This document shows, in pieces, positions 8,379 through 64,000 of a stretch of DNA of 64,000 bases; within the stretch, counting starts at the first letter, position 1; each line of letters opens with the position of its first letter. The stretch is from the NCBI RefSeq assembly GCF_000143415.4, contig NW_003314262.1, forward strand, positions 142,183 through 206,182, in the 5' to 3' direction. Under the pieces are notes generated by a model. That model made no database searches, had not been told where the DNA came from, and saw nothing but the letters and a program-made list of their open reading frames with translations. Made by a program: the position numbers and the translations under genes. This stretch comes from Selaginella moellendorffii. Lineage: Eukaryota; Plantae; Lycopodiophyta.

Positions 8379-10896
8379 TCACACTGGAGGAAAGAACTTG
8401 TTGAGATTGAAAGGCAGCTTGTAAAACTCCTCGTTCCTCTTGTCAGCTCCAAAGGTCCGGAAGTTCTTCCACCAATTCGCTCCTCTATCCTTCTTTGTCA
8501 CCTTAAGCTTGAGTGTGTTGTCGAGGACGACGCCAACGATCAGCGCAATCACTGGCCCGGACGAGAGAGTCACGTTCAATATATCGTTAAACTGCGCGAC
8601 CAGACTCGGAGTTTAGTGCCTACGTAGTGATTCTCGAGAAGAAGCTAGCTTACCCAGTGTGATTTCGTGTGAACTGGGCCATGTCCAGCCGAGATTGTAA
8701 ACTCTCGAATGTATTCCGGGACGGAGAAAGCCATGAACACGGAGAAGCCGAGAATGATCAAGTTGCGAGGTAAGTTGAGGTTTGTGAACTGGAGATACGA
8801 GACACCACTCGCAGCTAGGATAGAGAGAGGGTTAGAGGGTTTAGGGTTTAAGAGAGAGGGTTAAAGAAAGAAAATTCACCCAAGACTCCGAAGAGCACGC
8901 AGTAGATGCCAGCCACCATTGCCGCGGGGATCGATGCAAAGATACCACCGAATTTTCCTGGAAACAATTCACTTACTCGTTAGATCGTGAGTCTTCCAAA
9001 CCTGAGAAGAAGTTCTTACCGAACAAGCTGAAAAAGATCATGAAGAAAGCTGCGACTTGGATGGTTCGTCGGCTTCCAACTCGAGTGATACCAACAAGCC
9101 CCGCATTCTCACTGCAAAAAGATCCCACCTTTACAGAACAGCAGCAAAAACGAGAAAAAAGAACTTACACAGAGATAGTCGGACCAGCTGCCGTTCCAAA
9201 GATACCATTTATGAAAATTCCAACACCCTGTGAATCGAAAAATTGATGGATCTTATGCAAAGTTTGATGTGGATCTACAAACCTGCCAGCCAATACCACG
9301 GCTCAGGACGTACGAGGGAGGTGGCGTAGCACCAGCGAGCCGCGCAATCCCATAAAACGATCCAGTCGACTTGGAAAGAAAAGAAAATAGCCGAGTGATC
9401 GACCGATCGAGTGGATTTCAAAAAAACAATAGAGCTTACTTCGACTAGTGACACAATGGCACCGGCAAGCATCCCAAACGCATGGCTCGCGTTGAAAGTT
9501 GGAGCTCCCCATTCCAGTGGGTATGGAACACGAATCCTACAAACAAGGAGAGAGTTTTAATCTTGTGACAGTTTCATGTTCATACCATGGAGAGGATCGA
9601 ATGAGATTGGCCCGATCAGTCCGGCAGTGGATCTGTCCTAGCTCGCTCGAGTGCTTGTAAGCGCCAGTGATTGTGAGGAAGTGAGCGTAGGCCCAGGTGA
9701 GAGCCACAGCGATGACAATTGCAAAGCGCTCGAAGAATGGCATCTTCTTGCTCGCCTTGAGCGTCTTGAGATACTGAAAATGCAAGAAACAATCACACAA
9801 ACTACTCGAGAGAAAATTACTTCTGCGTTAAATACCTGAGAGAACAGGAGTATGAGAAGAATCTGCGGGATCCCAATTTGGACGCACTTTCCAACCTGTG
9901 ATCAAAGAAAGATTTTATCTTTTTCGCGCAAAGAAATTTTTTTTTTTATAAGTTACCCCTGGAAAGCCGAGCTGAAACATCCCAATGCCGACCATCAAGA
10001 TCACGGGACCGATAGTGAGAGGACTCGTGTACCTGGGGACATGGAACAAAACAGAGAATGGATTTTCAAGGCCTAGTGTTCCAAGACAGGAAAAACAAAA
10101 ACAAACGATCGAGTCTTAAACTATACCTTGAAAAAATACCCCAGAGTCCACTGAAGCCAAGGACTATCTGGAGAATGGAGGCACAGATGAGAGCTCCCTG
10201 GATGGCTTTCATCGAGTGAAGAAACCTCTGAGAAGAACGATGGAAAACAAAACAAAATACCACTTTCAGGGTCAGCTTTGGATCGAATCGCAGAAGAAAA
10301 AATGGATTTTTTTTGTACCTCGCGATCGTCTGTGATGGCTCGCAGCTTGGGAGAGTTGATGATGCTGAATATGGGGAGGATGTAAGCGTAGGAACCCCCC
10401 ACAATGGCCGGAAGCCTAGTTCCAAGGAAGGACTGGATGAGCGTGTTGATGCCGCTCGCAAAGAGTAGTGTTTGAATCACTCGAGCCTTGTCCCTCTGAG
10501 AGGGAAAGAAGACATAACAAGAAGAGCAAGCAACCGATTTAGTTCTCTCTATCAGCGATCGAGAAGAAGAAGACTCTCAAACAAAGTTCAAGGTTTTCTA
10601 GAAAACAAGAAAACTTACATCGTTTCCCCCCATAGCGTAAACGAGAGGAGTCGTGACCAAAACCGTTGTTCCGACCATGGTAAGATAGTGCTGGAATCCG
10701 ACAAGAATGGTCTCGGCTGCTCAAAAAAAAAAAAAACGAGACCAAGAAAGTCACACATAAGAAACCCACGATCGATCGATCGGAAAAACCGCAAGAACAA
10801 ACCGAGAGGAGGGCTGTCATTGACACAGTAGTCAAGCTCGGGGAGCTGCTCTTGAACCAGGTGCTGGTAGTCATTTTTTCCCCCTCCTCCAGACAT
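8379..10896 (-). CDS. Nucleobase-ascorbate transporter (NAT/NCS2 family), multi-exon
   Basis: ATG at 10896 ('MSGGGGKNDYQHLVQEQLPELDYCVNDSPP'). Exons include 'IQTLLFASGINTLIQSFLGTRLPAIVGGSYAY', the NAT signature 'ENAGLVGITRVGSRR', and the C-terminus 'NEEFYKLPFNLNKFFPPV*' ending at 8379. Short GT-AG introns. Confidence 0.93.
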
Positions 10897-11544
10897 TTTG
10901 ATCTTCTCCGTGATGAAACCACTCAATCGCTCGCTCGATCGCTCGATCGCTGCTCGCAGCTTTTTCCTTGCGGCAGAAGAAACAAAAACAAATCTATAGG
11001 GAACTCGCGTCTTCTGTCTTACCGTAACTAGTGGTACTGTTACATCGTAAGCCGGGTCGGCATTTCGTGGCGGAATGTCGAGACACAACGCGATCGACGG
11101 CCTGGATCTTTTGGTGGGGATATTCCGGGCTAGCGTTAGGGGTTTAAGTAATCATCAGCGAATTCTTTCAACGGTAACTTTCGACGCGAGCCAAAGATCG
11201 AGAAAATTAAAAGTAATGCCTCCTTGCATGGTTTTTACGGCGGCCAACTTTACCAAGATATGAATATCGGGCTCTGTGATGTCGATGAATCCCACTATTT
11301 ATTTTGATGCATGTGAGCAGTAAACCATGACCACGAGAACATTCCACAACTTCATCTCATGATGTAGATTGATCATGAAATATAACAGTGACAAAATGTT
11401 ACTTTCATCGACTGTCTGGCATCTGGACTTGTGCTCAAGGTTAGATCCTCAATAAGAAGTTTATTTCTTTTTGGATCTACACCTTACTACAGATGAGTTA
11501 GGGCTTTTAAACAAAGTAACGTGAAGAGGGCTGGGGTGTGGCTA

Positions 11545-39221: not shown

Positions 39222-39960
39222 CCGAGATTTAGGGTTTGGCGATGGCTGCTGATAGATGCGCGCGGCGATCTCCAGAAGCGGCGTGGACGATGCGTGCCGG
39301 AGCTACGCGCGCCTCCTCAAGGAATGCGGTAGGCTGGGGGATTTGGCGCAGGGCAAGCGCCTCCACGCGCAGATCCGCGAATCAGGGCTCCTGCTCGACG
39401 ATCGCGAGGAGAGCGGCGCGCGATTCCTGGGCAACTGCCTCGTCCAAATGTATGGCAAATGCGGCAGGACTGACGAGGCGCAGCGCGCATTCGACTCCAT
39501 CGCGCACAAGAACATCTTCTCCTGGACGTCGATTCTCGTGGCGTACTTCCACGCGGGCCTCCATGCCCAGGCGCTGGAGAGATTCCACCAGATGATCAAG
39601 GCCGGCGTGGAGCCCGACCGACTTGTGTTCCTGGCGGCTCTCAACGTGTGTGGCATCCTCAAGCGGCTCGAAGACGGTGCCGGGATCCATCGCCAGATCC
39701 AAGACAAGCTGCTGGATTCCGATTTGGAGATCGGGAATGCGCTGGTCAGCATGTATGGGAAGTGTGGGAGGCTGGATCTCGCCAAAGAGCTCTTCGATTG
39801 TTTGGAGAATGGGAGGAGAAGAGAGACTTGGGGGCTTCTTCGATCCATGGCGGTGGAAGGGATAAAGCCGGACAAGCTTTTGCTCCTCACGCTGCTCAAC
39901 GTTTGCTCCAGCCGGGGAGTTTTGGACGAGGATAGCTGGATGGCTCACGACTATATCGTC
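39222..39960 (+). pseudogene. Truncated 5' duplicate of the PPR-DYW gene
   Basis: Nearly identical to 48428-49214, with an in-frame 48-nt deletion (RRNVISWTILVSVFAE lost). Ends at 'gactatatcgtc', fused to NAT intron sequence. Confidence 0.93.
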
Positions 39961-48285: not shown

Positions 48286-48461
48286 GTGGGTGATCGACTC
48301 CCCTGCTCTCATGAAATGCATGTATAGCGCAGCCAATGGTATCTTTTGTGTAGGATCCACACACCATTAAAGCGCATTATCGGTCTAAACAAAGGGCAAT
48401 GGAGTTTTTAAACCCTAGAGAATATGCCCGAGATTTAGGGTCTGGCGATGGCTGCTGATAG

Positions 48462-51400
48462 ATGCGCGCGGCGATCTCCAGAAGCGGCGTGGACGATGCG
48501 TGCCGGAGCTACGCGCGCCTCCTCAAGGAATGCGGTAGGCTGGGGGATTTGGCGCAGGGCAAGCGCCTCCACGCGCAGATCCGCGAATCAGGGCTCCTGC
48601 TCGACGATCGCGAGGAGAGCGGCGCGCGATTCCTGGGCAACTGTCTCGTCCAAATGTATGGCAAATGCGGCAGGACTGACGAGGCGCAGCGCGCATTCGA
48701 CTCCATCGCGCACAAGAACATCTTCTCCTGGACGTCGATTCTCGTGGCGTACTTCCACGCGGGCCTCCATGCCCAGGCGCTGGAGAGATTCCACCAGATG
48801 ATCAAGGCCGGCGTGGAGCCCGACCGTCTTGTGTTCCTGGCGGCTCTCAACGTGTGTGGCATCCTCAAGCGGCTCGAAGATGGTGCCGGGATCCATCGCC
48901 AGATCCAAGACAAGCCGCTGGATTCCGACTTGGAGATCGGGAATGCGCTGGTCAGCATGTATGGGAAGTGTGGGAGGCTGGATCTCGCCAAAGAGCTCTT
49001 CGATTGTTTGGAGAGGAGGAATGTGATCAGCTGGACGATCTTGGTGTCCGTGTTTGCGGAGAATGGGAGGAGAAGAGAGACCTGGGGACTTCTTCGATCC
49101 ATGGCGGTGGAAGGGATAAAGCCGGACAAGGTTTTACTCCTCACGCTACTCAACGTTTGCTCCAGCCGGGGAGTTTTGGACGAGGATAGTTGGATGGCTC
49201 ACGACTATATCGTCGGGGGTGGATTGGATCGCGAGGCGGTGGTGGCCACCGCGCTGCTCTCCATGTTTGCGAGGTGTGGGAGAGTGGACAAGGCCAGGGA
49301 GATCTTCGAAAAGGTGGCGGATCACTCGGCACAAGTGATCGAATGCTGGAACGCGATGATCACGGCTTACGCTCATAGAGGGTGCTCCAAAGAGGCTCTT
49401 TTCCTGCTCGATTCTCTCCAGCTCCAGGGAGTGAAGCCGAATTGCATCACCTTTATCAGCTCTCTTGGTGCCTGCTCGAGCTTGCAAGACGGTCGAGCTC
49501 TACACCTTCTCATCCACGAGAGTGGATTCGATCAAGAGGTATCGGTGGCGAACGCGCTGGTGACGATGTATGGGAAGTGCGGGAGCTTGCTGGATTCGGC
49601 CAAGCTCTTCTCGGAGATGGCTGAGAAGGACCTGGCGTCCTGGAACTCGGCCATCGCCGCTCACTCTTACCACGGACGCAGCGACGAGTGCATCAAACTC
49701 CTGGATCAAATGCGAGGAGAAGGATTCCTGTACGAGAAGGTAACTTTCCTCACAGCTCTCAACTCGTGCACTGATCCAGCTTCGCTGCAAGATGGAGTTT
49801 TGATGCACGAGAAGATCGTCCAGTGTGGATACGAGGCGGACACGGTGGTGGCGTCGGCGGTGATCAACATGTACGGGAGGTGTGGAGGTCTGGACAGAGC
49901 GAGGGAGATCTTCACCAGAGTGAAAACTTTCGACGTGATCCTCTGGACCGGGATGCTCACAGTCTACTGTCAACTCGGCCGGACCAAGCAAGTGATGGAG
50001 CACTTTCGATCCATGCTCCACGAAGGATTGAAGCCAACGGGAGTGACTCTCGTGAACTTGATCACCTGCGTCGCGGATTCCGGACTGGAACACTTCCGAG
50101 ATGGAGTGTGGATCAGCTCTCTGGCCTGGGAGAGTGGACTGGAATCCGAGACGATGGTTGCAAACTCTCTCATCGAGATGTTCTCGGAGTTCCGGAGCTT
50201 GAGCCAGGCGAGAGCCATCTTCGACAGGAATCCCGAGAAGAGCGTTGCGCTCCACACCACGATGCTAGCGGCGTACGTGAAGGGAGAGCGCGGCAAAGAA
50301 GCCGGTGTTCTTCGCGAGCACGCTCAAGCAGCCATGGAGCTCTTCCAGACGATGCAAGCACAGGGGCAGAGACCTGGCCTTCCAACTTTCGTCATGGCAG
50401 TGGACGCCGCGGGGATCTTAGCAGCGCTCTCGTCGGGAATAACTCTCCACAGCTCCATTGTGGAGTGTGGCTTCCTCTCCGACGCTCACGTCGCTACCGC
50501 GCTCATCGACATGTATGGGAAGTGTGGAGACTTATCGTCCGCCGAGAAGATCTTCCAGTTCTTCCTCGAGTCCTCGCGGGCAGACATGGTGCTGTGGACG
50601 TCGATGATGGGAGCTTACGTCCAGCTCGATCGGTGCGAGCGAGCGCTCACTCTTTTCGCGAGGATGCTGCTTGAGGGGCTGGAGCCGAGCAGCGTGACGC
50701 TCGTCACGGCCATGAGTGCGTGTGGTGGGCTGGCGGATCCATCCTCGAGCAAGCGCGTCCATGAGCGGGCCAGGGAGCTCGGGCTAGAGTCCGAGACGTG
50801 CGTCGCGAACGGGCTCGTGGACATGTACGGCAAGGCCGGCGACGTGGACACCGCGCGGTATATCTTTGACCGTGCGTTGCGCCGGAACGTCACGACTTGG
50901 AACGCCATGGCGGGCGCTTACCGGCAGTGTGGCGTGACGCGCGGTGTACTGTGGCTCGTACGGACCATGCAGCGCGACGGGTACCGCCCGGATTCGGTCA
51001 CCTTTGTGAGCCTTCTATCGGTTTGCGGCCACTCGGGGCTCTTGGAGGAGGCGCGCTACAACTTCGTGGCGATGCGCCGCGAGTTTGGGATTGATCCATC
51101 GCCCAAGCACTACTCCTGCGTCATCGATCTGCTGGCGCGCGCTGGAGAGCTCCAGCAGGCCGAGGATTTCATCGCCAGGATCTCGGTTTCTTCCCCGGCA
51201 TCCTCCCCGATGTGGATGGCGCTGCTGGGCGCTTGCCGGAGCTTGGGCAATTCCTCTTCCCGGGCGAGGCGCGCGGCCAGGAATGCGATGGACGTAGAGA
51301 AGATGGAGCCGCGGTCCCAGCACGATCCATCAGCCGCCCACGTCGCGCTGGCGAACATCTGTGCCGCGAGTGGGAATTGGGACGAGGCGCTGAGCATCCG

Positions 51401-51842
51401 CAAGGCGATGGCGGAGAAGGGATTGAGGAAAGAGCCCGGGAGGAGCTTGATCGCGGTTAAGAACCGGCTGCACGAATTCGTGGCAGGCGATCGCGATCAT
51501 CCGCGGCGCGAGGAGATCTATGCCGAGCTCCGGAGGCTGGAGAGGGCGATGGTGGATCGAGGATACGTCGTGGACACGGGAATGGTGACACACAATGTGG
51601 GCGAGGCAGACAAGAGGGATCTACTGGGCTGCCATAGCGAGAAGCTCGCAGTGGCGTTTGGGGTGCTCAGCACGCCGCCCGGATCGAGCTTGCGGATCAT
51701 CAAGAACCTGCGCGCCTGTGGCGATTGTCACACCGCGATCAAGCTCATATCGGCGATCGAGGGGCGGGAGATCGTGGTCAGGGATTCCAATCGTTTCCAC
51801 CACTTTAGAAATGGGAGCTGTTCTTGCGGAGACTACTGGTAA
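48462..51842 (+). CDS. PLS-class pentatricopeptide repeat protein with E and DYW deaminase domains (organellar C-to-U editing factor type), 1126 aa
   Basis: Repeated 'NALVxMYGKCG' motifs, PG box 'PGRSLI', zinc ligands 'HSEKLA' and 'CGDCH', and terminal 'CSCGDYW*'. Confidence 0.96.
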   Translation: MRAAISRSGVDDACRSYARLLKECGRLGDLAQGKRLHAQIRESGLLLDDREESGARFLGNCLVQMYGKCGRTDEAQRAFDSIAHKNIFSWTSILVAYFHAGLHAQALERFHQMIKAGVEPDRLVFLAALNVCGILKRLEDGAGIHRQIQDKPLDSDLEIGNALVSMYGKCGRLDLAKELFDCLERRNVISWTILVSVFAENGRRRETWGLLRSMAVEGIKPDKVLLLTLLNVCSSRGVLDEDSWMAHDYIVGGGLDREAVVATALLSMFARCGRVDKAREIFEKVADHSAQVIECWNAMITAYAHRGCSKEALFLLDSLQLQGVKPNCITFISSLGACSSLQDGRALHLLIHESGFDQEVSVANALVTMYGKCGSLLDSAKLFSEMAEKDLASWNSAIAAHSYHGRSDECIKLLDQMRGEGFLYEKVTFLTALNSCTDPASLQDGVLMHEKIVQCGYEADTVVASAVINMYGRCGGLDRAREIFTRVKTFDVILWTGMLTVYCQLGRTKQVMEHFRSMLHEGLKPTGVTLVNLITCVADSGLEHFRDGVWISSLAWESGLESETMVANSLIEMFSEFRSLSQARAIFDRNPEKSVALHTTMLAAYVKGERGKEAGVLREHAQAAMELFQTMQAQGQRPGLPTFVMAVDAAGILAALSSGITLHSSIVECGFLSDAHVATALIDMYGKCGDLSSAEKIFQFFLESSRADMVLWTSMMGAYVQLDRCERALTLFARMLLEGLEPSSVTLVTAMSACGGLADPSSSKRVHERARELGLESETCVANGLVDMYGKAGDVDTARYIFDRALRRNVTTWNAMAGAYRQCGVTRGVLWLVRTMQRDGYRPDSVTFVSLLSVCGHSGLLEEARYNFVAMRREFGIDPSPKHYSCVIDLLARAGELQQAEDFIARISVSSPASSPMWMALLGACRSLGNSSSRARRAARNAMDVEKMEPRSQHDPSAAHVALANICAASGNWDEALSIRKAMAEKGLRKEPGRSLIAVKNRLHEFVAGDRDHPRREEIYAELRRLERAMVDRGYVVDTGMVTHNVGEADKRDLLGCHSEKLAVAFGVLSTPPGSSLRIIKNLRACGDCHTAIKLISAIEGREIVVRDSNRFHHFRNGSCSCGDYW

Positions 51843-52034
51843 AGAGATAAGGTTTAAAATTTGAAAATATGGCGCGCAAAGATTAGGTCATTAGGAACCC
51901 GATTAGCAATTATTAATTTTGTCTTTATCACAGCCGTTCGTGACGGATCGATCTGAGCTGTTGGTCTAAGCTAGGGTTTTTGGGCATATCTACGTATATT
52001 TGTTCTTCATCCAAGAGCGCGAGCGCCTGGCGTG

Positions 52035-53986
52035 ATGGCGTTTCCCTACTTGGAATCCGTTGTCGGTGAGTGTCTCGCTTCGATTTCGCCACGAAATATC
52101 GGTGTTCTTGGCCAGGGTTCATGATCTTCATGTATTTCGTGGAGAGTTACTTGCATCTCCGCCAATACAGGGCTCTCAAGCTCCCCACGCTGCCTCCCAC
52201 GCTCGAAGGCGTCGTCAGCCAGGAGAAATTTGAGAAGTCGCGCGCTTACACTATTGAAAAGAGGTTTTTTTATAAAGTTTCAAAGCGCTCTTCTTACTTA
52301 AATCTCTTTTGATATTTCAATGCAGCCGCTTTCAGTTCATACACTCGGTATGGACAATCGTTGAGGAGTGCTGTATGCTGCTGCTGAAAATTTTGCCGTG
52401 GATTTGGATGGTATAGTGGTGTTTCATGTTAGTATTTGACGATCATTAGCTCTTTGTGCGCTCAGAAATCCGGAGATTTGGCAGTAAGGCTGGGCTTTGA
52501 TCCTCAAAACGAGATCGCACAAACACTGGCTTTTCTCGTCCTGACAACTATATGGTCTCAAGTAAGATAAAAAAGCTTTGTAGATTGTTAAAACATCATT
52601 GTGTGCTTTATTCTTCAGATAACGGAGCTTCCTTTCGCCTTGTATTCCACCTTTGTGATTGAAGAGCGTCATGGATTTAATAAAGTTTGCCGCCTTTCTT
52701 TTGTTTCCGCTGTGCCTTCTTCTAACCTTGAGCTTTTTTGGACCAGCAAACGATATGGCTCTTCTTTAAAGACATTCTAACGGGCCTACTTCTTATGGTG
52801 GTGCTTGCCCCGCCAATTGTTTCAGCTGTAATCATCATCGTCCAGGTATGGTGAAGAGTTTCCTCTGTTTTTTTTTATATATATATGAATGGTGAGTGCA
52901 GAAAAGTGGCCCATATCTTGCGATTTATCTGTGGGGATTCATTGTTGTCCTCGGGCTTCTTATGTTGATACTGTATCCACTCGTGATCCAACCATTGTTC
53001 AATAAGTTTACACCCGTAAGCTCACGCACATAGTGTAATCTCTTGAAACTGACATCGTAACTGTTGCAGCTCCCGGAAGGATCTTTGCGAAAGCAAATTG
53101 AGGATCTGGCTGCCTCTCTGAAATTTCCTTTGAAGAAGCTGTTTGTGGTAGATGGCTCTACCCGAAGCAGTCATAGCAACGTAAGTAACTGTTTGTGGCT
53201 GTTGGTTACTGAATTTTTACTCTTTTGCAGGCATACATGTATGGCTTTTTCAAAAGCAAGCGCATTGTGCTATACGATACACTAGTTCAGCAAGTACGCT
53301 ATTTCACTTGTCTCGTTTCATTCGATACGATGCTGTTTACAGTGCACAAACGAGGACGAGGTAGTGGCCGTGATAGCGCACGAACTGGGACACTGGAAGC
53401 TTAATCACACGACATATTCGTTCATAGCGGGACAGGTTTTGTATCACACGTACATGGCGCGTTTGCTGACGCTTCTTTTTGCTTGCTGCTCTGTCCAGTT
53501 TCTTACTCTACTCCAGTGCGTCGGATACACGTTCGTCCGGAACTCCAAGGATTTGTTCCACAGCTTTGGCTTTACCACTCAGCCGGTACTTATCGGCTTG
53601 CAGCTGTTCCAGGTATTTCTCTTACGCCTTTTCTTAAGAAGAAGTGGACCATAGCTAATATTATCAATGCAATGCAGCACACGTTGACGCCACTTCTTCA
53701 CGTTGCTGGCTTTGTGATGAACCTTGTGAGTCGCGCGTTTGAGTTCCAGGTAAGAAAACTCGAGAGATCGCTGGGGAGTGTTTTTGAGCTTTGCTCTCTA
53801 CAGGCTGATAATTTTGCGGGTGAGCTGGGCTACGCACTCCCGCTCCGTGGCGGGCTTATCAAGCTCCAGGAGGAGAACCTGTCCGCCATGAACACTGATC
53901 CCTGGTACTCCACTTACCACTACTCCCATCCTCCTCTGGTGGAACGGCTGGCGGCGCTGGACAAATTCCAAAAGAAGACCGAGTGA
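52035..53986 (+). CDS. STE24: CAAX prenyl protease 1 (peptidase M48), multi-exon
   Basis: '[10 protein letters not shown]|GFMIFMY', '[19 protein letters not shown]', HExxH motif 'IAHELGHW', and '[27 protein letters not shown]'. Confidence 0.93.
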
Positions 53987-54212
53987 GCGAAAAGAAGAAG
54001 CGAGATCATTGTATGTAAATTTCCTCTCGATTTTGGTTTCAAACCACCTCGGACCGGACCACATTATCAAAACTTAAAGCTTGTGCGAAATCGTGAGCTT
54101 AGATTAGACTAAGGTCATTATTCTACAGGCAAGAAAATACTATATCATCGCCCTCGAGTTATTTGTACATGCCTTCGAGTGGAAAAATTTAATAATCTCT
54201 CTTCTTTTTTCT

Positions 54213-57200
54213 TCACACCTGGTCAGAGTAGTGGTGATGGCGGCCATTGCTGTGGCCATTGCCTTGGTCACGCCGTGGTATGGCATGGTAGCTCTTGGCC
54301 CGGAAGAACGTCTGGTACGATGGAGCGCTCACTCGCGGGATGAGCGGGCAGCTCGCGGCGCGGAAGAAGCTAATCGTGTTACACTTTGATCGGCAGCACT
54401 TTCTCCACAAACCATGGATCGCTTTTACCACAGCGTCCACCACCAGGCTGAGCGACGCCACTCCCACGCAAAAGAGCCACTGGCAGGGGCTCAGGGGCGT
54501 GGTGCTCGCCACGGAGCCCAGCCACTCGATCAAAACCACCTGGAACACAACCGTGGCCGTCACGATCGCGAGGAAAAACCGGTTGTCCAGGTGCCGGAAC
54601 ACGTTGATCTTGTCCATCTCTCTCGAGTTGAACTCGTTAAAAACCTGGCGTGGATCGGCATCTAGTGAGCAAACGAAACCCGAGCTCGAGCGGCGGAGGC
54701 ACTAACCTGGAAGAAGACGAAGGTGTTGAAAATGATCGTGTTGAGCACCAGCTTTCCGTGGTCGCCCGCGTCAACGAGGCCGAAGATCTCCAGCCCCCGG
54801 TACTGAAGTACAATGAGCACGACGAGCTGGAACACAGACTGTGCAAGCACGTTCCTGCACATCACCGGACTGATGAAATTCTCCTTTCTCCGCACTGGCG
54901 GCCTCTTCATTAATCCCGCATGTGGGGACTCCGTAGCAAGCGCCAGGGCCCCGAGAGTGTCCATTATCAGATTCACCCACAACAGCTGGATCACAGTGAG
55001 GGGAACGTCTCCTGCGCCGAGGAAAGCGTTAGGAAACGCATTAAGTAAGTTATACGGAGAATCGTCGCAAAAGGAACAGGAAGAAAAAAGAAGTACCTGT
55101 GGAGCAGGCGGACCAAAAGTTGAGGGCGAGCGCCACCAGATTCACAGTCGCTTGGAACTGAACAAACTTTTGAATATTGGTGTAGACAGACCGACCCCAG
55201 AGCGCAACATTGACTATGGACGCAAAGTTGTCGTCGAGGATTATGATGTCTGAGCTCTCCTTAGCAACCTGTAACAAGGGAAGACGCAATTAACAATGCT
55301 TCAATCATCAGGACGAAATCATGTGAACTACCCAGCAGAATTAAGAAGAATAATATTTAATCGGGGCTACCAACCTCGGTTCCAGCTATTCCCATGGAAA
55401 TCCCAATGTCTGCTTCACGGAGAGCAGGAGCATCGTTTGTTCCATCTCCTGTTACTCCAACAACTTCCCCCATAGCTTGCAGTTCCTTGACAAGCCTGTG
55501 CTTGTCGGAGGGGCTCGATCTAGCTAATATCTGATTGAAAAAGGAAGATAAGTACGAGTGCTCAAGCAGAGCATCAAAAACTTACCTGCATCTTTGGGAT
55601 TCTTCGCCGCATTTCTTCGCCAGTCCAGCTTCTGAAAACGGGCCCTTCGACAGCTTCACCGTCCGTAAGAATCCCACACTCGCGAGCAATCGCCATAGCT
55701 GTGTATAAGTTATCACCGGTCACCATTCTTACTCGGATACCAGCGGACATGCACATCCTTACAGCTTCCTCCACCCCGGGCCTCACCGGATCCTTGATTC
55801 CGACAATCCCGGCACAGACAAAACCTTGCTGGGGAAGCGCTTCCTCCCCCTGCGGAGCGATCTCCAAGTCTCTGTAAGCTAAACAGAGCGTTCGCAGACC
55901 TTCATCTGCAAACCTTCTGATGATTCCTCTCAGCTCCCAGTTTTTGCTGTCGTCGAGAGCGACTTTCCTGCCTTGAGAGTCGAGGTACCAGTCACACATC
56001 CCCATAACTATCTCCGAGGCCCCCTTCCAATGCACACGATACGAGGGAGCCGATTGCTCACCACCACCGTTAACGGCTACCAGAACTCCCATCATCTTCT
56101 TCACCGAGTTGAACGGCTCCACGCGAATGACCCTGGATCTGGATCGGACCTCGGACACCAGTCCTTGCCAATTGCCCGCCAAGTCCAATCCAAACTGGAG
56201 CAGCGCCGTCTCGGTGGGAGTTCCAATCACTTCCACCGTCTTGGTCTTCGGATCATATGCCTCGCCAGGGCATACCACCACCTCTCCACTCGTGTTCTGG
56301 AAGATCCCTTCCAGGACCATCTCTCGAGAAGATCTTGACACCACCGGCACCCGCTCTGTTCTCCCCGCGACCAGTAATTCGTCCCCGATCCACGACTTGA
56401 TTACAGTCATCTGATTCGTCGTGAGCGTCCCCGTCTTGTCGCACAGTATACACGTCGCGGACCCCATCGTCTCGCACGCCGCCAGGTGCCTCACGAGTGC
56501 CTTCTCGCTCATCATCTTCATCATCGCGAATGCCAGGGACAGCGTCACCGCCAGAGGAAGCCCCTCGGGCACCGCCACCACCACGATCGTCACGGCCGTG
56601 GACAAGAACTGGACGCCCTTCATCACGTCGTGCATCGACCAAGCACCACTCTTCGAAGTCACGTACTTGGTCACCAGGATCACAAAGATGGCCACTGCCG
56701 ATCCAAGACCAATCTTCCCGATGAGCGTCGCCAGATCCTGGAGCTTGTGCTGGAGAGGAGTCTCGGACTGCCCGGAATCCTCCCCGCTGAGAATCGACAT
56801 ACTGTGCCCCCATTCGGTGTTCATTCCCACGCCAGTGACGATCATCACCCCCGATCCATCGCCAATCTTGGTGCCCGAGATGAGGAATGGCTGCTCGGCC
56901 GATTTTGCTCGCATCTCACTCTCGCCTGTCATGCACGATTCATCCACCAGCAGCGACTGGCCGTAGAGTAGCAAGCCATCCGCCGGGATCTGATCGCCAA
57001 TGCCGAGATGGACAATGTCACCGACCACCAGCTCTGACGCTAGGATCCTCCGACGCTTGGCGGACCGAGTGACCTGTATGTAGACCTTTCCCTTCTCCTT
57101 GTCGAGAGCCCGGAACTGGACAGCCTGCTGGTAATCGCTGCTAGCCGAGACCGTGATCACCAGCACGACGGAGACGAGGATCCCAGCTCCATCGCACCAG

Positions 57201-57651
57201 CCGTCGCGGAATCCCTTCGTCGCGATGCCCACCGCAATGGAGACGAGCGCGCAGACCACCAGGATGAGGAGCGTCAGATCCTGCGAGGCGTCGAGAATGT
57301 AGGAGAAGACGCTCCTCTGCGGCGATTCCTTGTAGGTGTTGGATCCAAACGCTCGCCGGCGCGCATCGAGCTCCGAGGGATCGATGCCATGCTCGATGCC
57401 GTGGACGTGGAGCTTGCCCGCGATTCCGAGCACGCCGCCGTGATCGCGGAGGAGGCGCGCGTCGGATTGCTGCACGATGGATGACAGCGTCGAAATATCG
57501 ATCGCGAAGGCCTCGTCGTCGGTGTTCTTGAGCAGCGGCCCTGCGAAATACCGCCAAGAACCAGGAAATCACGACAGCGATTCAGGATTTCCGCACGATC
57601 TCGATGCGAAGAACACGAATCCATACCTCGCGACACGATGATCGCCTCCAT
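54213..57651 (-). CDS. P2B-type Ca2+-ATPase (ACA-like) copy B, with short N-terminus and extended C-terminus
   Basis: Motifs [29 protein letters not shown] and '[17 protein letters not shown]'. Predicted exon 1 at 57651-57627 (MEAIIVSR), GT-AG intron 57626-57541, in frame with the large exon. Start codon uncertain. Confidence 0.9.
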
Positions 57652-57827
57652 TTCTATCGAGCTGCGCCTGCGTCGAGCGGCAAAATACCCCTCACCTCGT
57701 AGGGTTTTGGCGCACAACCACGATCAATGCTAAGCGCGCGCCAATCCCACGCTCTTGGCGAGGATTCTCGAAGATCATCGCGATGAGAGCCACAGGGAGG
57801 ACGAAAAGAATTGATTTGATGATAGCC

Positions 57828-57885
57828 TCTCTCTCTCTCTCTCTCTCTTTTCTTCTCTCTCTTTTCTTCCCTTCCCTTCCCTTCC
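57828..57885. repeat. (CT)n / CTTCC pyrimidine microsatellite upstream of ACA-B
   Basis: 'ctctctctctctctctctctctttt...cttcccttcccttcc'. Confidence 0.8.
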
Positions 57886-58459
57886 TAGGCTAATCCCTTC
57901 TAATTTTTACACTGCCAGTGTTAAGGGCTGGGCCATGGCGCTAAGATTAGGGCAGGCGTACGGACGGGACAGGATCCCGGCTTCCGCGCAGCTGCGGGGT
58001 GGAGAATATTCGCACATGCCAGGTCGATTTGAAATTTGAATTTAACCTAGAATTTAGGGCGGAGTCAGACTCGCGGGGAGATTTTTCAGAGATGGAAGCT
58101 TCACGGAAAGGCTGGGCGCTGTCTCTAGCACTGTGGGGCTTTCCTGTTGAAATCGGTGAAGTATTGCTACAATCCTGGATCTAGATCTGGATTGGCTGGT
58201 TTCGAGCGAATGGGACGAAATTCTTCCTGTTCCATCGATCACCACACCGAGGTCTTTTCGCTTTTGATTCGATTCGATGGGGATAATCAAGCGGCAAACT
58301 TTGCATTCCATTGACAAGCTTGCTTGCTTTCGTCCCTGGAAATCAAAGTTTCCTGGAAACGGTGAGGAAACAAAACTTAGCTCCCTTTCTCTTGGTGAAG
58401 CTCTCCTTTTTTTCTTCTTCTTCTTCCACTCTCGCCAACTTCGCAGAGAGGGTGGAGTT

Positions 58460-61400
58460 TCATGCGCTCTGCGGCAAGGGCTGGTAGCCATCGTTGTCCT
58501 CTTCGTCGTTGTCGCTGGAATGCGAGGAGAAGCACGACGATTCTGCCGGGACTGGAATGAGCTTGCCGAGCATTGCCAGTGGCACGCCGATGGCCCCGAG
58601 CAGCACGCTGATCCCCCACTGCTTTGCATTTAGCGGGGTGGTGTCGGCCAGCTTGCCCAGGAACTCCACCAGAATGGTCTGGAAAACCACCGTGAAGAGG
58701 ATCACCAGGAGGAAAGTTATGTTGTTGAAGGTGTGCTTGAAAACGTTGAGCTTCTCCATGTCTCTCGCATTCAGCTCGTTGAATACCTGTAGCAGCGGCG
58801 ACAGTGAGAAAAACTAGACAGAAAGCAATAGAGTTTACCTGGCAGAACACGAAAACATTGAAGATGAGGGTGTTGAGCGTCAAGGTGTCGTAGCCGAGAA
58901 TGTCTTTTCCCTTGTACAGGAGAACATTAAGAACGACGAGCTGATAAACGACCTGGACTGCTATGTTCCTCCACATGACGGTGCTTATAAAGGATCCTTT
59001 ACGTCCAACGGGTGTTCTCTTCATCAGATCATCCGTCGGTGGCTCGGTTGCCAGAGCAAGAGCACCCAACGTGTCCATGATCAGATTCACCCACAGTAGC
59101 TGCACAGCAGTGAGCGGAGCCGTCCCTGATCAACGACAAGAGAAGAAAATGTCACATATGAGACCCAAGAACTTAAAGAGTAAAGAATCTTACCTGTGAT
59201 GCAAGCAGATGTAAAATTCAACACGAGGGCCACAAGGTTCACTGTAAGCTGGAACTGGACAAACTTTTGGATGTTTGTGTAGACCGAGCGGCCCCATTTT
59301 GCTACCACCACTATAGTGTTGAACTTGTCGTCTAGAATAACTATATCAGCGCTCTCCTTTGCTACCTGTTGCATAAAAATAAAATAAAATAAAATATTCC
59401 GGCCTCTCAGAACGATTTAAAGAAGATCAAGATGAAAAGTAGTACCTCCGTTCCAGCAATTCCCATGGCCAAGCCAACGTCTGCTTCATGTAAAGCCGGA
59501 GCGTCGTTGGTTCCATCGCCAGTTACGGAAACCACTTCATCCAGAGCTCGCAATTCTCTTACGAGAGTGTGTTTGTCAGTTGGAGAGGATCTTGCCATAA
59601 CCTTCCAGACGAAACGGAGATAAATAATTAGAAAGCTCAATAAAAACGTCGGCTTGCTTGCTTACCTGCAAGCTGGGAATCAACTTTCTCATCTCTTCGG
59701 TGCTGAGGCGACGAAAGTCGGGCCCTTCAATCGCTTCACCGTCTGTGAGGATGCCACACTCTCGAGCAATGGCAACCGCGGTGTTGATGTTGTCACCCGT
59801 TACCATTCGAACCTTGATACCAGCTGCGAAGCAAAGCTGGACGGCCTCCCTCACTCCTGGCCTTACCGGATCCTTGATACCGACGATTCCAATGCAGGTG
59901 AAGCCATTATCGGGAAGTTTATCTTCAGCAGGCTCGCTCTCCAGTTCTCGGAACGCCATGCACAGCGTCCTCAGAGCCTCGTCGGCGAAAGTCGTGATAA
60001 TTCCCTTGAGCTCGCGGTATTTCTTCTCGTCTATGGGACAAACGTTGCCTTCGGTGTCGAGGTACTTGTCACACATGCCCAGGACAATCTCCGAAGCACC
60101 TTTCCAGTGAGCACGGATGGTTCCATGGCCGCCCTTTACCAGCACCCCCATTCTTTTCTTCGCCGAGTTGAACGGCTCAACCTTGAGAATGCTCGACTGG
60201 CTTCTCACGTCCTTGAAGTTACCTCCCAGGCTGATACCAAACGATAGAACCGCAGTCTCGGTCGGAGTTCCTATCAGGTCCGGCTTGCCTCCCTCTCCAT
60301 CGCCGACGTCTCCACTTGTGTTCTGAAAGCAGTTCTCAAGCACCAGCTCGTGAAGTTCAGCACAGACTTCCGGCCTTGACTCGCTCCAAACTCTTCCACC
60401 AATCCATGACTTCACCACAGTCATGTGGTTTGTCGTTAAAGTTCCAGTCTTGTCGCTGCATATGCAAGTCGCCGATCCCATCGTTTCGCAAGCGGACAGA
60501 TGCCTCACCAGGGCCTTGTCCCTCATCATCTTCTTCATCGCGTACGCCAGAGTAAGCGTCACCGCAAGCGGGAGGCCTTCGGGCACAGCAACGACGATGA
60601 TAGTCACGGCGATGGCGAAGAAGTTGACGATCTCGAGAGCGTCATGAGTAACCAGCTGGAACCTCTTCTTGATCAAAAACCTCAGGAGCAAGACGAGGAA
60701 AGTCACGACCGCAAAGCCGAGGCCGATTTTCCCGATCAAAGTCGCCACTCCATTGAGCCTTACTTGCAAAGGAGTCTCGTCGTCACCACCTTCACCCAGC
60801 ACAGCCATCAGGTGCCCCCACTCCGTGTTCATTCCAACACCCGTGACGAGCATCAGTGCCGAGCCATCCTGAACTTTCGTCCCCGAAAGCAAAAACGGTT
60901 TATTCTTCCCGACATGCTGTGGTTCACTCTCCCCGGTCATGGACGACTCGTCGATCACCAGCGAGTACCCGGAGATAAACAGCCCGTCCGCTGGAACTTG
61001 ATCGCCGATGGAAAGATGCACCACGTCTCCAACAACAAGATCGAAGATGGAAACCTTCTGCCGCTTGTGGTTCCTTGTCACCTGTACAAGTATGTTCTTC
61101 TTCTCTTTGTCGAGATCCCTGAACTGGAGAGACTGCTGGTAGTCGCTTGCAGCAGTGACGAAAACCACGAGAATAATGCTGAGCGCAATGCCAGTTCCAT
61201 CGTACCACCCTTCCTTCCAGCCTTCCGTGAGCACACCGATCACCAGCGAGAGGATCGCGCAAAAGCCGAGAATCGCCAGCGTCAAGTCGTGCATGGCCTC
61301 CCACACGAACACCCAGAATCCTTTCGGCGGCTTCTCCTCGTACATGTTGGACCCGAAAGCTTCCTTCCTCTTGTCGATCTCGTCTTTGGAGACTCCATCG

Positions 61401-62116
61401 TCGAGGCTCACCAGTAGCTTCTGAGCCACCCCGTGAATCCCTCCCATAGATTTTAGCGTGGACTCTTGAGCGCTCCTGTCACCCAGTGACGATAGTTGCT
61501 TTGGAGAAACTTGGAACCCGTGCTGCTTTGCTTTCTCGTCCTCGACAGTGGTAACATCGGGAGCGGAGATCCCAGCTGGAAAAGTTTAGAGTGATTGTCA
61601 GTCTGGAATGAAATTCCACTCGAGAAAGCTAGAACGCATCCAAAAAGAGCCAGGCACTCATAACTTCCACACAAAAGAGACGAGATCATCCAAAAGAAAA
61701 CTTGGAAAAGCCAGGACAAAGCTTTCACATGGAAAACACGCACGAGAGATCATCCAGAGAGCCAGGGAGAAAAAATCCGACGAGCAAGGAACTCACCATC
61801 GATGAATCGAAACGCGGCCCTCACGACTTGCCCGGTCGTCTTAAACTTCCGCCTCTGCAAAGAGAAGAAGAGGAACAATTAAGTGAGAACATCTCTAGGA
61901 AGAGCTATGGCAGCAGCGCCCAAAATCTCTTACCTTCTCGTCGGCGTCGCGCCTCTTCTTCACATTGGCAGTGTAGCGAAAGCGCCGCGAGGCATTGAGC
62001 ACAAGCGTGGCCTTTCTCCACGACTCGAGCACTTCCAATGGAGTGTCCTTGTGCGGGATCTCGAAGGTATTCTTGGATCCGCCCCTGCCTAGATCGGAGC
62101 CACGCCTGGATTCCAT
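58460..62116 (-). CDS. P2B-type autoinhibited Ca2+-ATPase (ACA) copy A
   Basis: N-terminal regulatory motif '[23 protein letters not shown]', plus [25 protein letters not shown] and QFQLTVN. Stop at 58460. Confidence 0.94.
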
Positions 62117-62604
62117 TCCTTCTCCCCCTTACCACACGGGCATTTGCGATATTTTGACCGATCGATTGATCGATCTACAGCAGCTAGACGACGACGACGA
62201 AGAAGAGGAAACGATCAAGAACCCTAACCAGACCTTATCCGATCGAACTGCTGCGCGAGATCGCTCGAGATTTCTCGCGGCTGTCGGGAAATCGGAGCGG
62301 CGCTGGGGAGGAGAGGCGCGCAACCGGACAAATGCGCGCATTCAAGGCGCTGTGGACGCGCCTGCGCGTTCTGTTACTGCTGCTGCTGCCCAGATTGTTC
62401 CTACCAGCGGAATGGTGGCGATTTGCCGATCGATCGCGTCGCTTGTCTGCGCTGCGCGATCAGGAGCAAGTCTTAAGCAGCTTCTTGGAGTACGGCCCTA
62501 GACCCCGCGTACGACCATCGTACCCTTCGTGCCCTTCACGCGTCACGACGCGGCCAGGCAATATAGACGAAGAAACTAACCATTGACCAATCAGACAAAG
62601 CTCT

Positions 62605-62913
62605 TGCTAATATAAGTTCCGAGCATTTTGGACAAATATCTTCATCCAAATTCTTAAGAAGAATTCTATAGCTTTCTACGCTTTGTAGCTTTGGGGGCCT
62701 ATCAAAAATCTCTTGTTATTGCTTGTGACAAAAAATCGCGACGAATTCTCTTTTGACATTGGTACGGACATGCTAATATAAGTTCCAAGCATTTTAGACA
62801 AACACGAACTCTATCTCCATCCAAATTCTCAAGAAGAATTCTATAGCTTTTCTACGCTTTGTAGCTTTGGGAGGCGATAGAAAATCTCTTGTTATTGCTT
62901 GTGACAATCGCGA
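62605..62913. repeat. Tandem duplication (~140 bp units) overlapping the aspartic protease stop codon
   Basis: 'tgctaatataagttcc.agcatttt.gacaaa...gaagaattctatagcttt..ctacgctttgtagctttggg...aaaatctcttgttattgcttgtgacaa' starts at 62605 and at 62771. Confidence 0.85.
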
Positions 62914-64000
62914 TGGCCTTTCTTCCATCCAACTCGGGAGTTTTCGAGGTCGTAAACCACCAGCTTGTCTTTGAGGACGATTTCTACACACGAGAGTTTC
63001 ATGGGAAGAAAAAGGATGCTTCTGTGATTTACCTCCCAAGACAGTGAGATCGCCAGACGATTGCCATACGTAGCAGTAGACGTGAATTTTCTGTTCGATT
63101 GTCAAAGTCATGAGCGCTTTCTTTGCTGTTGAAAATCGCTAATTTATTTTTCTTTTCGTTTTCACGCACCTGGTTTGTGGTGACAGGTGCCAAGTAGTTT
63201 TCAGGGGTCAAGCTCATGGACGCTCCACCTTGGAAGAAAAGAGTGATGTTTGGAAAAGACGAACCGAGGCTGGAACAAAGTAAGAAAAATCCGATTTTGT
63301 TTTTCAAGTACCTGGTTCTAACATGGAAGCACCGAGTTTCGTTGATGTCAGACGCTACTGTAGCGCTGGTTAAGTTTAAGATCTGCTTTAAGAAAAAAAA
63401 ACACTCTAGCGAAGAAAAAACATGGAAAAGGGAGCTTACGGTCTGGAAAAGAAGATTATTCGCTGCAGTCGAAAGTGTCGCAAATGTTGTGCCGCTGTCA
63501 AAAATGACTCCGTGAGTCCCGCTAGTGTTCCTGGTGTATAAAAAATCCTTTGTGTCGATCGGGAGGATCTTAGCGTTGACAGAAATGCCGAGTAGAATCA
63601 CGCTGTAATAGCCTCTGATTTCCAAAATCACGAACTTGTGTCAAGCAAGCAGAAAGGGAAAAAAGGAGACAAATTGAAAGCTCAAAACTTACGAGGTGTT
63701 CAGGAGAGGAGTGTAAACCATTCCTAGCTCTGGAGGAGATTCTCCAAGCGCAAGAACTCCACCACCATCTCTCTCTCCGCTTAAGCAATGCGAGAAAATT
63801 TTGGTGAGATTCCTCTGAGCTGCAATCTGGGACGGTGCGGCCAGCGGAAGCGGTCCAAATCCCATAACCCCATCACCTGGCCAGCTACCAGAGATATAAT
63901 TCGCACACCTGAAGAACACCGCTTGCGAAAAGGCCTGGAGCTATCAAAAACGTACCCGAGAAAAATCTGGGAAGTTTTATCACCCCTGCCTTGATCTCGC
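62892..64000 (-). CDS. A1-family (nepenthesin/nucellin-like) aspartic protease, 3' part; the gene runs off the window
   Basis: 'DGVMGFG', 'IFSHCL', second catalytic motif 'IFDSGTT', 'FPNITLFFQGGA', and last exon 'IVLKDKLVVYDLENSRVGW...HKQ*'. Confidence 0.88.

Follow-up and report, generated by a model that had tools for sequence, protein, structure and literature searches.

SmACA1 of Selaginella moellendorffii is probably a functional P2B Ca2+-ATPase that has lost the exon encoding its autoinhibitor, a naturally deregulated and calmodulin-independent pump whose C-terminal tail was elaborated from an ancestral one. Plant P2B pumps (ACAs) are the textbook "autoinhibited" pumps and carry a calmodulin (CaM)-binding autoinhibitory domain at the N-terminus, whereas animal PMCAs carry it at the C-terminus.

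The window, a stretch of 64,000 nucleotides, was placed on Selaginella moellendorffii scaffold GL377566.1 with 100% identity. SmACA1 (copy B; SELMODRAFT_437746 / D8QTC2, 1014 aa) lies in tandem downstream of SmACA2 (copy A; SELMODRAFT_266601, 1030 aa). Both names appear in Table 2 of Pedersen et al. 2012 (PMC3355532), and the SmACA1 gene itself is not new, having already been catalogued there. The segment 54213-57651, which a sequence-only reading had described as a Ca2+ pump deprived of its N-terminal autoinhibitor, matches the coordinates of the annotated 1014-aa gene exactly (57651..54213, minus strand, 3439 nt), and the observation as a whole was confirmed. The locus is organized as follows.

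58460..62116, minus strand: SmACA2 (copy A), 7 exons; the annotated protein threaded onto the window is reproduced exactly
62116-61934, 61854-61797, 61575-59666, 59601-59446, 59365-59194, 59125-58839 and 58786-58460, minus strand: SmACA2 exons
61934..62116, minus strand: copy A exon 1, CaM-binding autoinhibitory domain (CaATP_NAI; Pfam 4e-19, custom profile 1.9e-20), with no counterpart in copy B
57856..58090, no strand: intergenic stretch between the A 3' UTR and the B leader; RNA contigs absent in 4/4 runs
57820..57895, no strand: (GA)n / GGAAG-rich repeat at the 5' end of SmACA1 transcripts
57652..57855, minus strand: SmACA1 5' leader; contigs contiguous to 57819, plus 22-35 letters into the GA repeat
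57692..57778, minus strand: SmACA1 uORF in the leader, 28 codons, MIFENPRQERGIGARLALIVVVRQNPTR then stop; no detectable autoinhibitor homology
57627..57651, minus strand: SmACA1 coding exon 1, 25 nt from the ATG, 8 codons (MEAIIVSR), phase 1 end; RNA contig joint between 57539 and 57626 in 4 runs
55586..57540, minus strand: SmACA1 exon 2, 1955 nt; Cation_ATPase_N, TM1-4, A domain, DKTGTLT phosphorylation site, N domain and part of the P domain
55375..55530, minus strand: SmACA1 exon 3, from RNA contig joints and translation
55097..55268, minus strand: SmACA1 exon 4, TM5 region, from RNA contig joints and translation
54707..55011, minus strand: SmACA1 exon 5, TM6-TM8 with Ca-site N783 and D787, from RNA contig joints
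54213..54644, minus strand: SmACA1 exon 6, TM9-TM10, tail and stop codon (54213-54215); contigs unspliced from 54641 through 53900 in 4/4 runs

SmACA1 exon 1 stands at the place of copy A exon 2, with the intron phase of A intron 2 and of the Diphasiastrum genes described below, and the SmACA1 introns share positions and phases with copy A introns 2-6.

Copy A exon 1 carries the 17-residue CaM-binding motif that the sequence-only reading had located in it (Pfam CaATP_NAI match, 4e-19). By contrast, no such motif precedes the large exon of copy B, in agreement with that reading: the interval 57540-58460 (920 bp) was blank to Pfam and to a custom profile built from 82 ACA N-termini, which scored about 2 bits or less there in every frame of both strands and retrieved copy A exon 1, the positive control, at 1.9e-20. 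The SmACA1 protein gave no Pfam match to CaATP_NAI (PF12515) at E<=1, and its ACA homology begins at profile position 86-87, corresponding to B residue 12-13. Both ATGs put forward as candidate starts are unrelated to the autoinhibitor, as had been stated: 57651 is the annotated start, backed by spliced contigs, and 57778 opens the 28-codon uORF of the leader. By eye, the uORF product 'MIFENPRQE..' resembles copy A 'FEIPHKD..', and the next 28 nt are GT..AG-bounded with a compatible phase, as might be seen in a relic of the autoinhibitor exon. This candidate was rejected: Pfam was blank at E<=10, the custom profile reached about 2 bits or less, blastn returned nothing, the best Smith-Waterman match was a low-complexity K/R/E stretch from the GA repeat (score 38, reached by 4.7% of shuffles), and the contigs show no splice at that GT..AG.

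The transcripts give the same picture. RNA evidence consisted of spliced RNA contigs, which lose rare isoforms, from 4 runs listed under 4 studies. In these 4 runs, SmACA1 contigs display five GT..AG introns, their own exon 1 and their own leader contiguous to 57819, and the protein assembled from the contig joints is identical to the 1014-aa annotated SmACA1. No upstream exon was found in SmACA1 transcripts among the contigs of the 4 runs; they start in their own leader, without an upstream CaM-binding exon. DNA, transcripts and profiles all confirm that the N-terminal autoinhibitor has been lost. This loss is also secondary, because SmACA1 lies inside the lycophyte ACA group with SmACA2 and the Diphasiastrum ACAs (SH-aLRT 98), within the land-plant ACAs of a tree rooted on Zygnematophyceae.

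SmACA1 comprises the Pfam domains Cation_ATPase_N, E1-E2_ATPase, Cation_ATPase, Hydrolase and Cation_ATPase_C. Its catalytic motifs DKTGT, TGES, PEGLP and TGDGxNDxPAL are intact, as the sequence-only reading had held: they were read in the translation and are invariant in the alignment. The Ca2+-site residues E334 (PEGLP, TM4), N783 and D787 (TM6) likewise fall in invariant columns. Elsewhere, SmACA1 is changed at 32/362 columns that are >=97% conserved in canonical ACAs, versus 0-8 in six canonical ACAs checked. These changes concentrate just before TM3, where the canonical GHLMA..PLQVKLNGVAT is replaced. The ACA8 autoinhibitor has been modelled as docking near TM1/TM3 (bioRxiv 10.1101/2023.12.07.570580). 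This pre-TM3 segment, normally invariant and near the autoinhibitor docking region, is altered in SmACA1 and in both Diphasiastrum genes described below. A change at ACA2 positions E167, D219 and E341, which we take to be acidic residues whose mutation deregulates the pump, was rejected as a cause of deregulation: all three are acidic in SmACA1, with one conservative E-to-D also present in 30 canonical ACAs. Because 32/362 near-invariant columns are changed and the SmACA1 branch is 2-3 times longer than that of its relatives, kinetics or substrate handling may be altered, and full activity is not an automatic consequence of the truncation. The SmACA1 ORF is intact in both haplotypes (1014/1011 codons); 22 synonymous and 14 non-synonymous changes and a 9-nt indel that preserves the frame separate the two, and pN/pS is 0.20 (binomial p versus neutrality 2.7e-6; copy A, 0.24). 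SmACA1 is expressed and under purifying selection.

SmACA1 is not the only lycophyte ACA devoid of CaATP_NAI. Diphasiastrum complanatum O6H91_03G034900 (P0204) and O6H91_05G005800 (P0205) also lack it, and both have a 31-nt first coding exon with a phase 1 end, followed by the same four later introns as SmACA1. No CaATP_NAI-like exon was found within 10 kb upstream of either gene, and the pair has a common N-terminal peptide, M-x-x-GAY-x-P. Homology of the 'IIVS' of SmACA1 exon 1 with the Diphasiastrum 'VVVVS' was rejected because intron positions place them in different exons. The pair is changed at 25 and 40 of the invariant columns, 9 of these changes being common with SmACA1 (p 0.018). In ML trees under two models, SmACA1 groups with the pair with weak support (55/74 and 66/57); the alternative grouping of SmACA1 with copy A is not rejected (p-AU 0.21), and long-branch attraction is possible. 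The SmACA1 branch measures 0.8-0.96 substitutions per site, versus 0.22-0.43 for lycophyte relatives. The Diphasiastrum tails are basic, 34-41 aa long and without duplication, do not align confidently to the SmACA1 tail and, where canonical ACAs have K-x-I-P-V, show segments that are both basic and amphipathic (moments of 0.55 and 0.41). It is conceivable, though doubtful, that the three genes form an old lycophyte subfamily in which the switch was lost once, before the Selaginella/clubmoss split, the pre-TM3 docking surface was remodelled and regulation shifted to the basic amphipathic stretch that follows TM10; in such a subfamily, plants would have re-invented the layout of animal PMCAs. 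The Diphasiastrum pair with the truncated exon structure of SmACA1, its weak grouping with SmACA1 and the common pre-TM3 change are new in this analysis.

Could the autoinhibitor come from an exon that the gene model misses, through read-through from SmACA2 or splicing of A exons 1-2 onto B exon 2? RefSeq XP_002980822.2 is a 2169-aa model that joins A and B on haplotype 2. Moreover, phase 1 closes A exon 2 as well as B exon 1, so that an A-exon2/B-exon2 junction is in frame, and a minor transcript of this kind could escape the contigs. However, the bridge inside this RefSeq fusion is translated intergenic sequence without a CaM-binding domain. In the 4 runs, the B contigs possess their own exon 1 and leader, the copy A contigs stop at 58091-58233, and no contig covers 57856-58090. 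The Diphasiastrum pair also argues against a missed exon: both genes begin with a similarly short exon, their N-terminal peptide is conserved, and the 10 kb upstream of either contain nothing like a CaATP_NAI exon. We consider a missed exon quite improbable. Another view is that the loss of the N-terminus, the long branch and the odd tail reflect relaxed constraint in a duplicate heading to a pseudogene. The branch length, the 32/362 changed near-invariant columns and the variability of the tail between haplotypes would suit such decay, but an ORF intact in both haplotypes with its sole indel in frame, a pN/pS (0.20, p 2.7e-6) as low as that of copy A, full-length correctly spliced transcripts in 4 runs and the retention of all catalytic and ion-site residues make it very unlikely.

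The reading that we prefer, a functional pump freed of its switch, has engineered counterparts. When ACA8, ACA9, ACA10 or ACA13 is engineered to lack its N-terminus, the resulting pump is deregulated and rescues yeast K616 (PMC5920303, PMC12167975, bioRxiv 10.1101/2023.12.07.570580). Like the engineered ACA8 delta-74/97/100 and ACA10 delta-118, SmACA1 starts just before the conserved core and has no CaM-binding autoinhibitory region; unlike them, it is natural, expressed and selected, its core has diverged and it bears a long basic tail. The sequence-only reading had offered two branches, constitutive activity or a C-terminal CaM/phospho regulation. The former is well-founded because engineered N-terminal ACA deletions are deregulated and rescue K616, and SmACA1 has lost the domain while being expressed and under purifying selection; the latter did not go beyond physico-chemical plausibility. 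AtACA12 (Limonta et al. 2014), as cited in PMC5920303 and PMC12167975, is a naturally occurring ACA on which CaM has no stimulating effect; at full length it rescues K616. In the accounts given by these two papers, its N-terminal extension still binds CaM, and its deregulation is ascribed to two missing conserved acidic residues. SmACA1 differs from AtACA12, so described, in that the whole domain is gone and the acidic residues at ACA2 167, 219 and 341 are retained. Chlorophyte P2B pumps (O. tauri, C. reinhardtii) have no N-terminal CMBD, and a weak C-terminal CMBD-like sequence has been proposed for them (Pedersen et al. 2012, PMC3355532). The same study states that it identified no C-terminal extension among streptophyte P2B ATPases. 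The absence of the N-terminal CMBD in chlorophytes may be primitive, whereas that of SmACA1 is a secondary loss. Like animal PMCAs, SmACA1 is a P2B pump that has no N-terminal regulator and in which TM10 is followed by basic, aromatic sequence (W..F anchors), but its tail, 69 aa long and predicted disordered, has no sequence similarity or Pfam match to theirs, and CaM binding is only a candidate property.

The tail comprises the following features.

54216..54422, minus strand: SmACA1 C-terminal tail, residues 946-1014, 69 aa past the conserved K945, net charge +9
54274-54308 and 54334-54368, minus strand: two 35-nt direct repeats, 60 nt apart and 71% identical, each encoding 12 residues

The tail sequence is as the sequence-only reading had given it, lies in the last exon, unspliced in 4/4 runs, and contains W951..F964, a Cys cluster (954/955/959), RAASCP, YQTF and YHAIP. 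Among 152 ACAs it is the most basic and joint-longest (69 aa, +9). The features read in it hold: W951 and F964 provide the W-F anchors in 1-14 spacing, the RxxSxP site RAASCP is present at residues 966-971 in both haplotypes, and the FFRAxSxxxIPR duplication was confirmed: none of 300 codon shuffles came up to the 35-nt repeat, and none of 2000 shuffles to the amino-acid match of 8/12. TRF found nothing in the tail at score 30, the repeat being recovered by a repeat search and shuffle test. Conservation of the tail, on the other hand, did not emerge: among 5.8 billion proteins, no relative was detected (1 candidate of comparable length, 0 at E<=10), and the tail varies between haplotypes. Three of the 12 haplotype amino-acid differences fall in the tail or at its edge, 2 non-synonymous and 0 synonymous changes in the tail itself, among them A992G inside the second repeat, plus G949S at the edge. 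The claim that the tail was gained holds only in part: it seems to have been built up from the tail of about 35 aa that ancestral lycophyte ACAs had. MAFFT sets SmACA1 YHAIP under copy A YQPLP, in a region that the aligner splits, and G-Y-x-x-L-P closes 29/71 long canonical ACA tails, SmACA1 retaining the form Y-x-x-[LI]-P, a pattern suggestive of homology.

Such a tail might regulate or target the pump. In a regulatory-domain swap, SmACA1, and perhaps the Diphasiastrum pair, would be autoinhibited or regulated via the tail, the post-TM10 segment binding calmodulin or acidic lipids and RAASCP serving as a phospho/14-3-3 site, in convergence with PMCA. Generic CaMBD criteria are a net positive charge, an amphipathic helix, Trp plus Phe/Leu anchors and 15-30 residues (PMC10132250). 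Residues 950-967 of the exceptionally basic SmACA1 tail show a charge of +5, no Pro/Gly, the W..F 1-14 spacing and, at 0.44, a hydrophobic moment that stands at the 95th percentile of background (true N-terminal CaM sites, 0.39 +/- 0.09). The Diphasiastrum tails are basic and amphipathic too, that of copy A is acidic, and in the AlphaFold2 model of the full-length protein (mean pLDDT 73) the TM10 helix continues as far as residue 958, with dropping confidence. In the 1-5-8-14 pattern, W951/F964 fit, positions 5 and 8 are C and K, and a helix is predicted only to 958; residues 958-1014 are modelled at pLDDT about 30, disordered and undocked, and the model carries little information on the tail. 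Basic residues following a TM helix are common, and by our estimate RxxSxP occurs by chance in 69 residues at roughly the 5% level. Together with the absence of tail relatives (0 at E<=10) and of a Pfam PMCA C-terminal domain in SmACA1 (E<=1), the haplotype changes listed above and the lack of a confident alignment among the three tails, these points render the swap unlikely. Alternatively, the tail might be a targeting or anchoring device, with C954, C955 and C959 S-acylated and the YxxPhi-like YQTF and YHAI used for sorting. Three Cys lie within 10 residues of the TM10 end, and the G-Y-x-x-L-P ending is retained in SmACA1; but this proposal is purely motif-based, the Diphasiastrum tails have no Cys cluster at that position, and we regard it as improbable.

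Under the favoured reading of SmACA1 as a deregulated pump, the exon for the CaM-binding autoinhibitory domain would have been lost, translation would now begin in the 25-nt coding exon at the ancestral exon 2 position, and the protein would start about 12 residues ahead of the conserved core. Such an N-terminus could presumably not hold the pump off, nor would Ca2+/calmodulin be needed there as an on-switch, making SmACA1 a constitutive Ca2+ extruder with an output set mainly by the amount made, a quantity to whose control the 28-codon uORF may add. The tail would have grown through a 60-nt tandem duplication and a 12-nt repeat, with a putative function. A recent survey reported CaM-binding domains in all land-plant species examined there (PMC10132250). 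A land-plant ACA that is expressed and selectively kept though it has no switch, and that may have counterparts in another lycophyte order, would mean that P2B pumps can do stably without regulation. SmACA1 would also show, as a natural experiment, where in the core the autoinhibitor is the sole source of constraint, with the segment ahead of TM3 as a candidate, and it lends itself to testing whether regulation can pass to a C-terminal segment. In databases, the RefSeq A-B fusion model and the resulting mis-clustering conceal SmACA1 from representative-based searches.

The window corresponds to Selaginella moellendorffii scaffold GL377566.1, and the locus of the best protein match is 100% identical to window 48460-64000. 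Two P2B Ca2+-ATPase genes are arranged there head to tail, named SmACA2 and SmACA1 in Table 2 of Pedersen et al. 2012 (PMC3355532):

62116..58460, minus strand: copy A, SmACA2, SELMODRAFT_266601, 1030 aa
57651..54213, minus strand: copy B, SmACA1, SELMODRAFT_437746, 1014 aa

As a gene, SmACA1 is already known, and the sequence-only reading had placed copy B exactly on the annotated model. It shares 57% identity with SmACA2 and about 55% with every other ACA. RefSeq XP_002980822.2 (P0121, 2169 aa) fuses SmACA2 and SmACA1 via the translated intergenic region (positions 3001-10907 of the haplotype-2 locus L002 on GL377611.1, corresponding to window 54213-62116); no RNA contig supports the bridge. 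Because of this fusion, SmACA1 is drawn into the 90% cluster of SmACA2 and is thereby hidden from representative-based searches.

Logan contigs from four runs listed under four studies were placed on 53900-58800, passing over the (GA)n/GGAAG-rich repeat (57820-57895) with which the SmACA1 transcripts open on their 5' side. The RNA nature of the runs was guessed; the contigs themselves are spliced. Each of the 4 runs contained a long spliced SmACA1 contig with five introns; once the stated cut offsets are applied, 5/5 are bounded by GT..AG on the minus strand:

57626-57541, minus strand: intron 1, spliced contigs
55585-55531, minus strand: intron 2, spliced contigs
55374-55269, minus strand: intron 3, spliced contigs
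55096-55012, minus strand: intron 4, spliced contigs
54706-54645, minus strand: intron 5, spliced contigs

The joined exons encode a 1014-codon ORF identical to the annotated protein (P0122, D8QTC2). On the 5' side, contigs are unbroken between the first splice donor and 57819 and then extend 22-35 letters into the (GA)n repeat. Since no contig from the four runs covers 57856-58090 and SmACA2 contigs stop between 58091 and 58233, SmACA1 possesses a separate leader of its own; none of the four assemblies contains an upstream coding exon for it. The last exon continues unspliced past the stop codon, and the tail is therefore as originally read. In run X6, a 160-nt contig (57513-57672) keeps intron 1 at depth 8, versus 27 for the spliced contig, and derives either from pre-mRNA not yet spliced or from an isoform that retains the intron. 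The ATG at 57778 opens a short reading frame in the leader:

57692-57778, minus strand: uORF of 28 codons, within the transcribed leader, ending 41 nt before the main ATG

We initially took this uORF for a remnant of the missing autoinhibitor exon, a reading that failed testing. Such a uORF could reduce the translation of a pump devoid of post-translational control.

The N-terminal switch is missing from SmACA1. Pfam detects CaATP_NAI in SmACA2 exon 1 (4e-19) and no match in SmACA1 at E<=1. A custom profile covering the N-terminal 100 residues in 82 full-length ACAs finds SmACA2 exons 1, 2 and 3 (1.9e-20, 1.8e-4 and 3e-7), and gives no score above about 2 bits in any frame, on either strand, of 57540-58460. 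With a longer profile, the SmACA1 alignment begins only at position 86-87 (SmACA1 residue 12-13), beyond the entire autoinhibitory and calmodulin-binding region. Threading proteins onto the DNA gave seven exons for SmACA2, and the five SmACA1 introns match its introns 2-6 in position and phase, indicating that the 25-nt first coding exon of SmACA1 occupies the exon 2 position; the autoinhibitor-encoding exon has no counterpart. Pfam, custom profile and transcripts confirm the earlier observation that copy A carries the autoinhibitor motif and that none is seen in the ~800 bp before the large exon of copy B.

SmACA1 is not a pseudogene. Its catalytic motifs are intact, as previously proposed, and so are its Ca-site residues. 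Haplotype 2 (GL377611.1) carries an intact 1011-codon allele; 22 synonymous and 14 non-synonymous substitutions separate the two alleles, together with a single 9-nt indel that keeps the frame. The resulting pN/pS is 0.20 (binomial p 2.7e-6 versus neutrality), taken as equal to the 0.24 of SmACA2. SmACA1 is nevertheless strongly diverged: its branch measures 0.8-0.96 substitutions per site versus 0.22-0.43 in relatives, and it departs at 32 of 362 near-invariant columns (>=97% conserved in 149 canonical ACAs), versus 0-8 in the six canonical ACAs checked.

CaATP_NAI is likewise absent from two genes of Diphasiastrum complanatum, O6H91_03G034900 and O6H91_05G005800. Their longest products have a common short conserved N-terminus, both first coding exons are 31 nt with a phase 1 end, the later introns match those of SmACA1, and no autoinhibitor-like exon occurs within 10 kb upstream of either gene. 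The two pair with support of 100/99, and maximum-likelihood trees place them as sister to SmACA1 (LG+G4 55/74; LG+C20+F+G4 66/57), a weakly supported grouping for which long-branch attraction is possible; the AU test does not reject the alternative tree that groups SmACA1 with SmACA2 (p-AU 0.21). SmACA1 has rare residues in common with each Diphasiastrum pump at 13-14 columns, versus 3-7 with canonical lycophyte ACAs, and the invariant-residue departures of the three pumps overlap (9 shared, hypergeometric p 0.018), including the segment directly before TM3:

canonical: GHLMA..ETPLQVKLNGVAT
SmACA1: altered from canonical (16 residues)
Dc 03G034900: GHSMA..PLQQKLSRLAL
Dc 05G005800: GHAKE..PMQQKLSSLAI

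Current modelling of ACA8 places its autoinhibitor at the Ca2+ entry path, near TM1 and TM3 (bioRxiv 10.1101/2023.12.07.570580), and the pre-TM3 changes would be consistent with a docking surface freed from constraint.

The SmACA1 tail comprises 69 residues past the conserved K945, with a net charge of +9. It is the joint-longest and most basic tail in a set of 152 ACAs, where the canonical medians are 17 residues and charge 0. Canonical ACAs of lycophytes have tails of 33-35 residues, with charges between strongly acidic and almost neutral (-7, -5, +1). The FFRAxSxxxIPR duplication noticed earlier is real: a 35-nt repeat, with copies 60 nt apart and 71% identical, exceeds all shuffles and is followed by a small 12-nt tandem repeat. 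The tail itself, by contrast, had been considered a gain, and here we differ: YHAIP, within the second repeat, matches a G-Y-x-x-L-P motif of long ACA tails, suggesting that the SmACA1 tail is an elaborated ancestral tail, a homology proposed across a region that the aligner splits. G-Y-x-x-L-P is present in 29/71 canonical ACA tails of >=25 aa, about 8-12 residues before the C-terminus, and is common in bryophyte, lycophyte, zygnematophyte and ACA4/11-type ACAs:

window about 58472-58489: SmACA2 G-Y-x-x-L-P motif, residues 1022-1027

This YxxPhi-like motif might be a sorting signal and is not known to have been described.

The sequence-only reading was correct on the missing autoinhibitor, the tail sequence and the intact motifs, and left two outcomes for regulation. 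That SmACA1 is controlled through its C-terminal tail, by calmodulin or phosphorylation, has a low probability. In its favour, residues 950-967 are basic and amphipathic, with a charge of +5, the pair W951/F964 and a moment of 0.44 (95th percentile of background); the Diphasiastrum pumps have similar stretches, and SmACA2 has none. However, no protein of similar length was found to have this tail, Pfam detects no PMCA-type domain in SmACA1, the AlphaFold2 TM10 helix reaches only residue 958 with the remainder at pLDDT about 30, and haplotype differences in the tail are 2 non-synonymous and 0 synonymous, plus G949S at the edge of the tail. The constitutive or deregulated outcome fares better: by analogy, SmACA1 would best be read as a naturally N-terminally truncated, calmodulin-independent ACA, because ACA constructs with the N-terminus deleted are deregulated pumps that rescue yeast K616 (PMC5920303, PMC12167975), and ACA12 is a natural deregulated isoform, like the state proposed here. 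Pedersen et al. reported that "most" of the P2B pumps in their species have CMBDs and that streptophyte P2B pumps lack C-terminal extensions, and did not single out SmACA1 (PMC3355532). New here are the transcript-level proof of its gene model, evidence that purifying selection acts on it, a proposed origin for its tail and its likely lycophyte relatives sharing the pre-TM3 change.

Downstream, a Peptidase_M48 gene (52035-53986, plus strand) is convergent with SmACA1, its annotated end lying 227 nt from the SmACA1 stop codon; RNA contigs cross the 3' ends of both genes, so their 3' UTRs probably overlap. Farther on, an intronless gene (48462-51842, plus strand) encodes a PPR protein of 1126 aa that carries a DYW deaminase domain; the final ~700 nt of the gene recur about 9 kb away (39254-39960; 99% and 95% identity). 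Between SmACA2 and SmACA1, the intergenic region (57652-58459) shows 6 substitutions in 808 nt (0.74%) between haplotypes, below introns (2.3-2.8%) and synonymous sites (about 3%), which, with numbers this small, may reflect promoter or UTR constraint.
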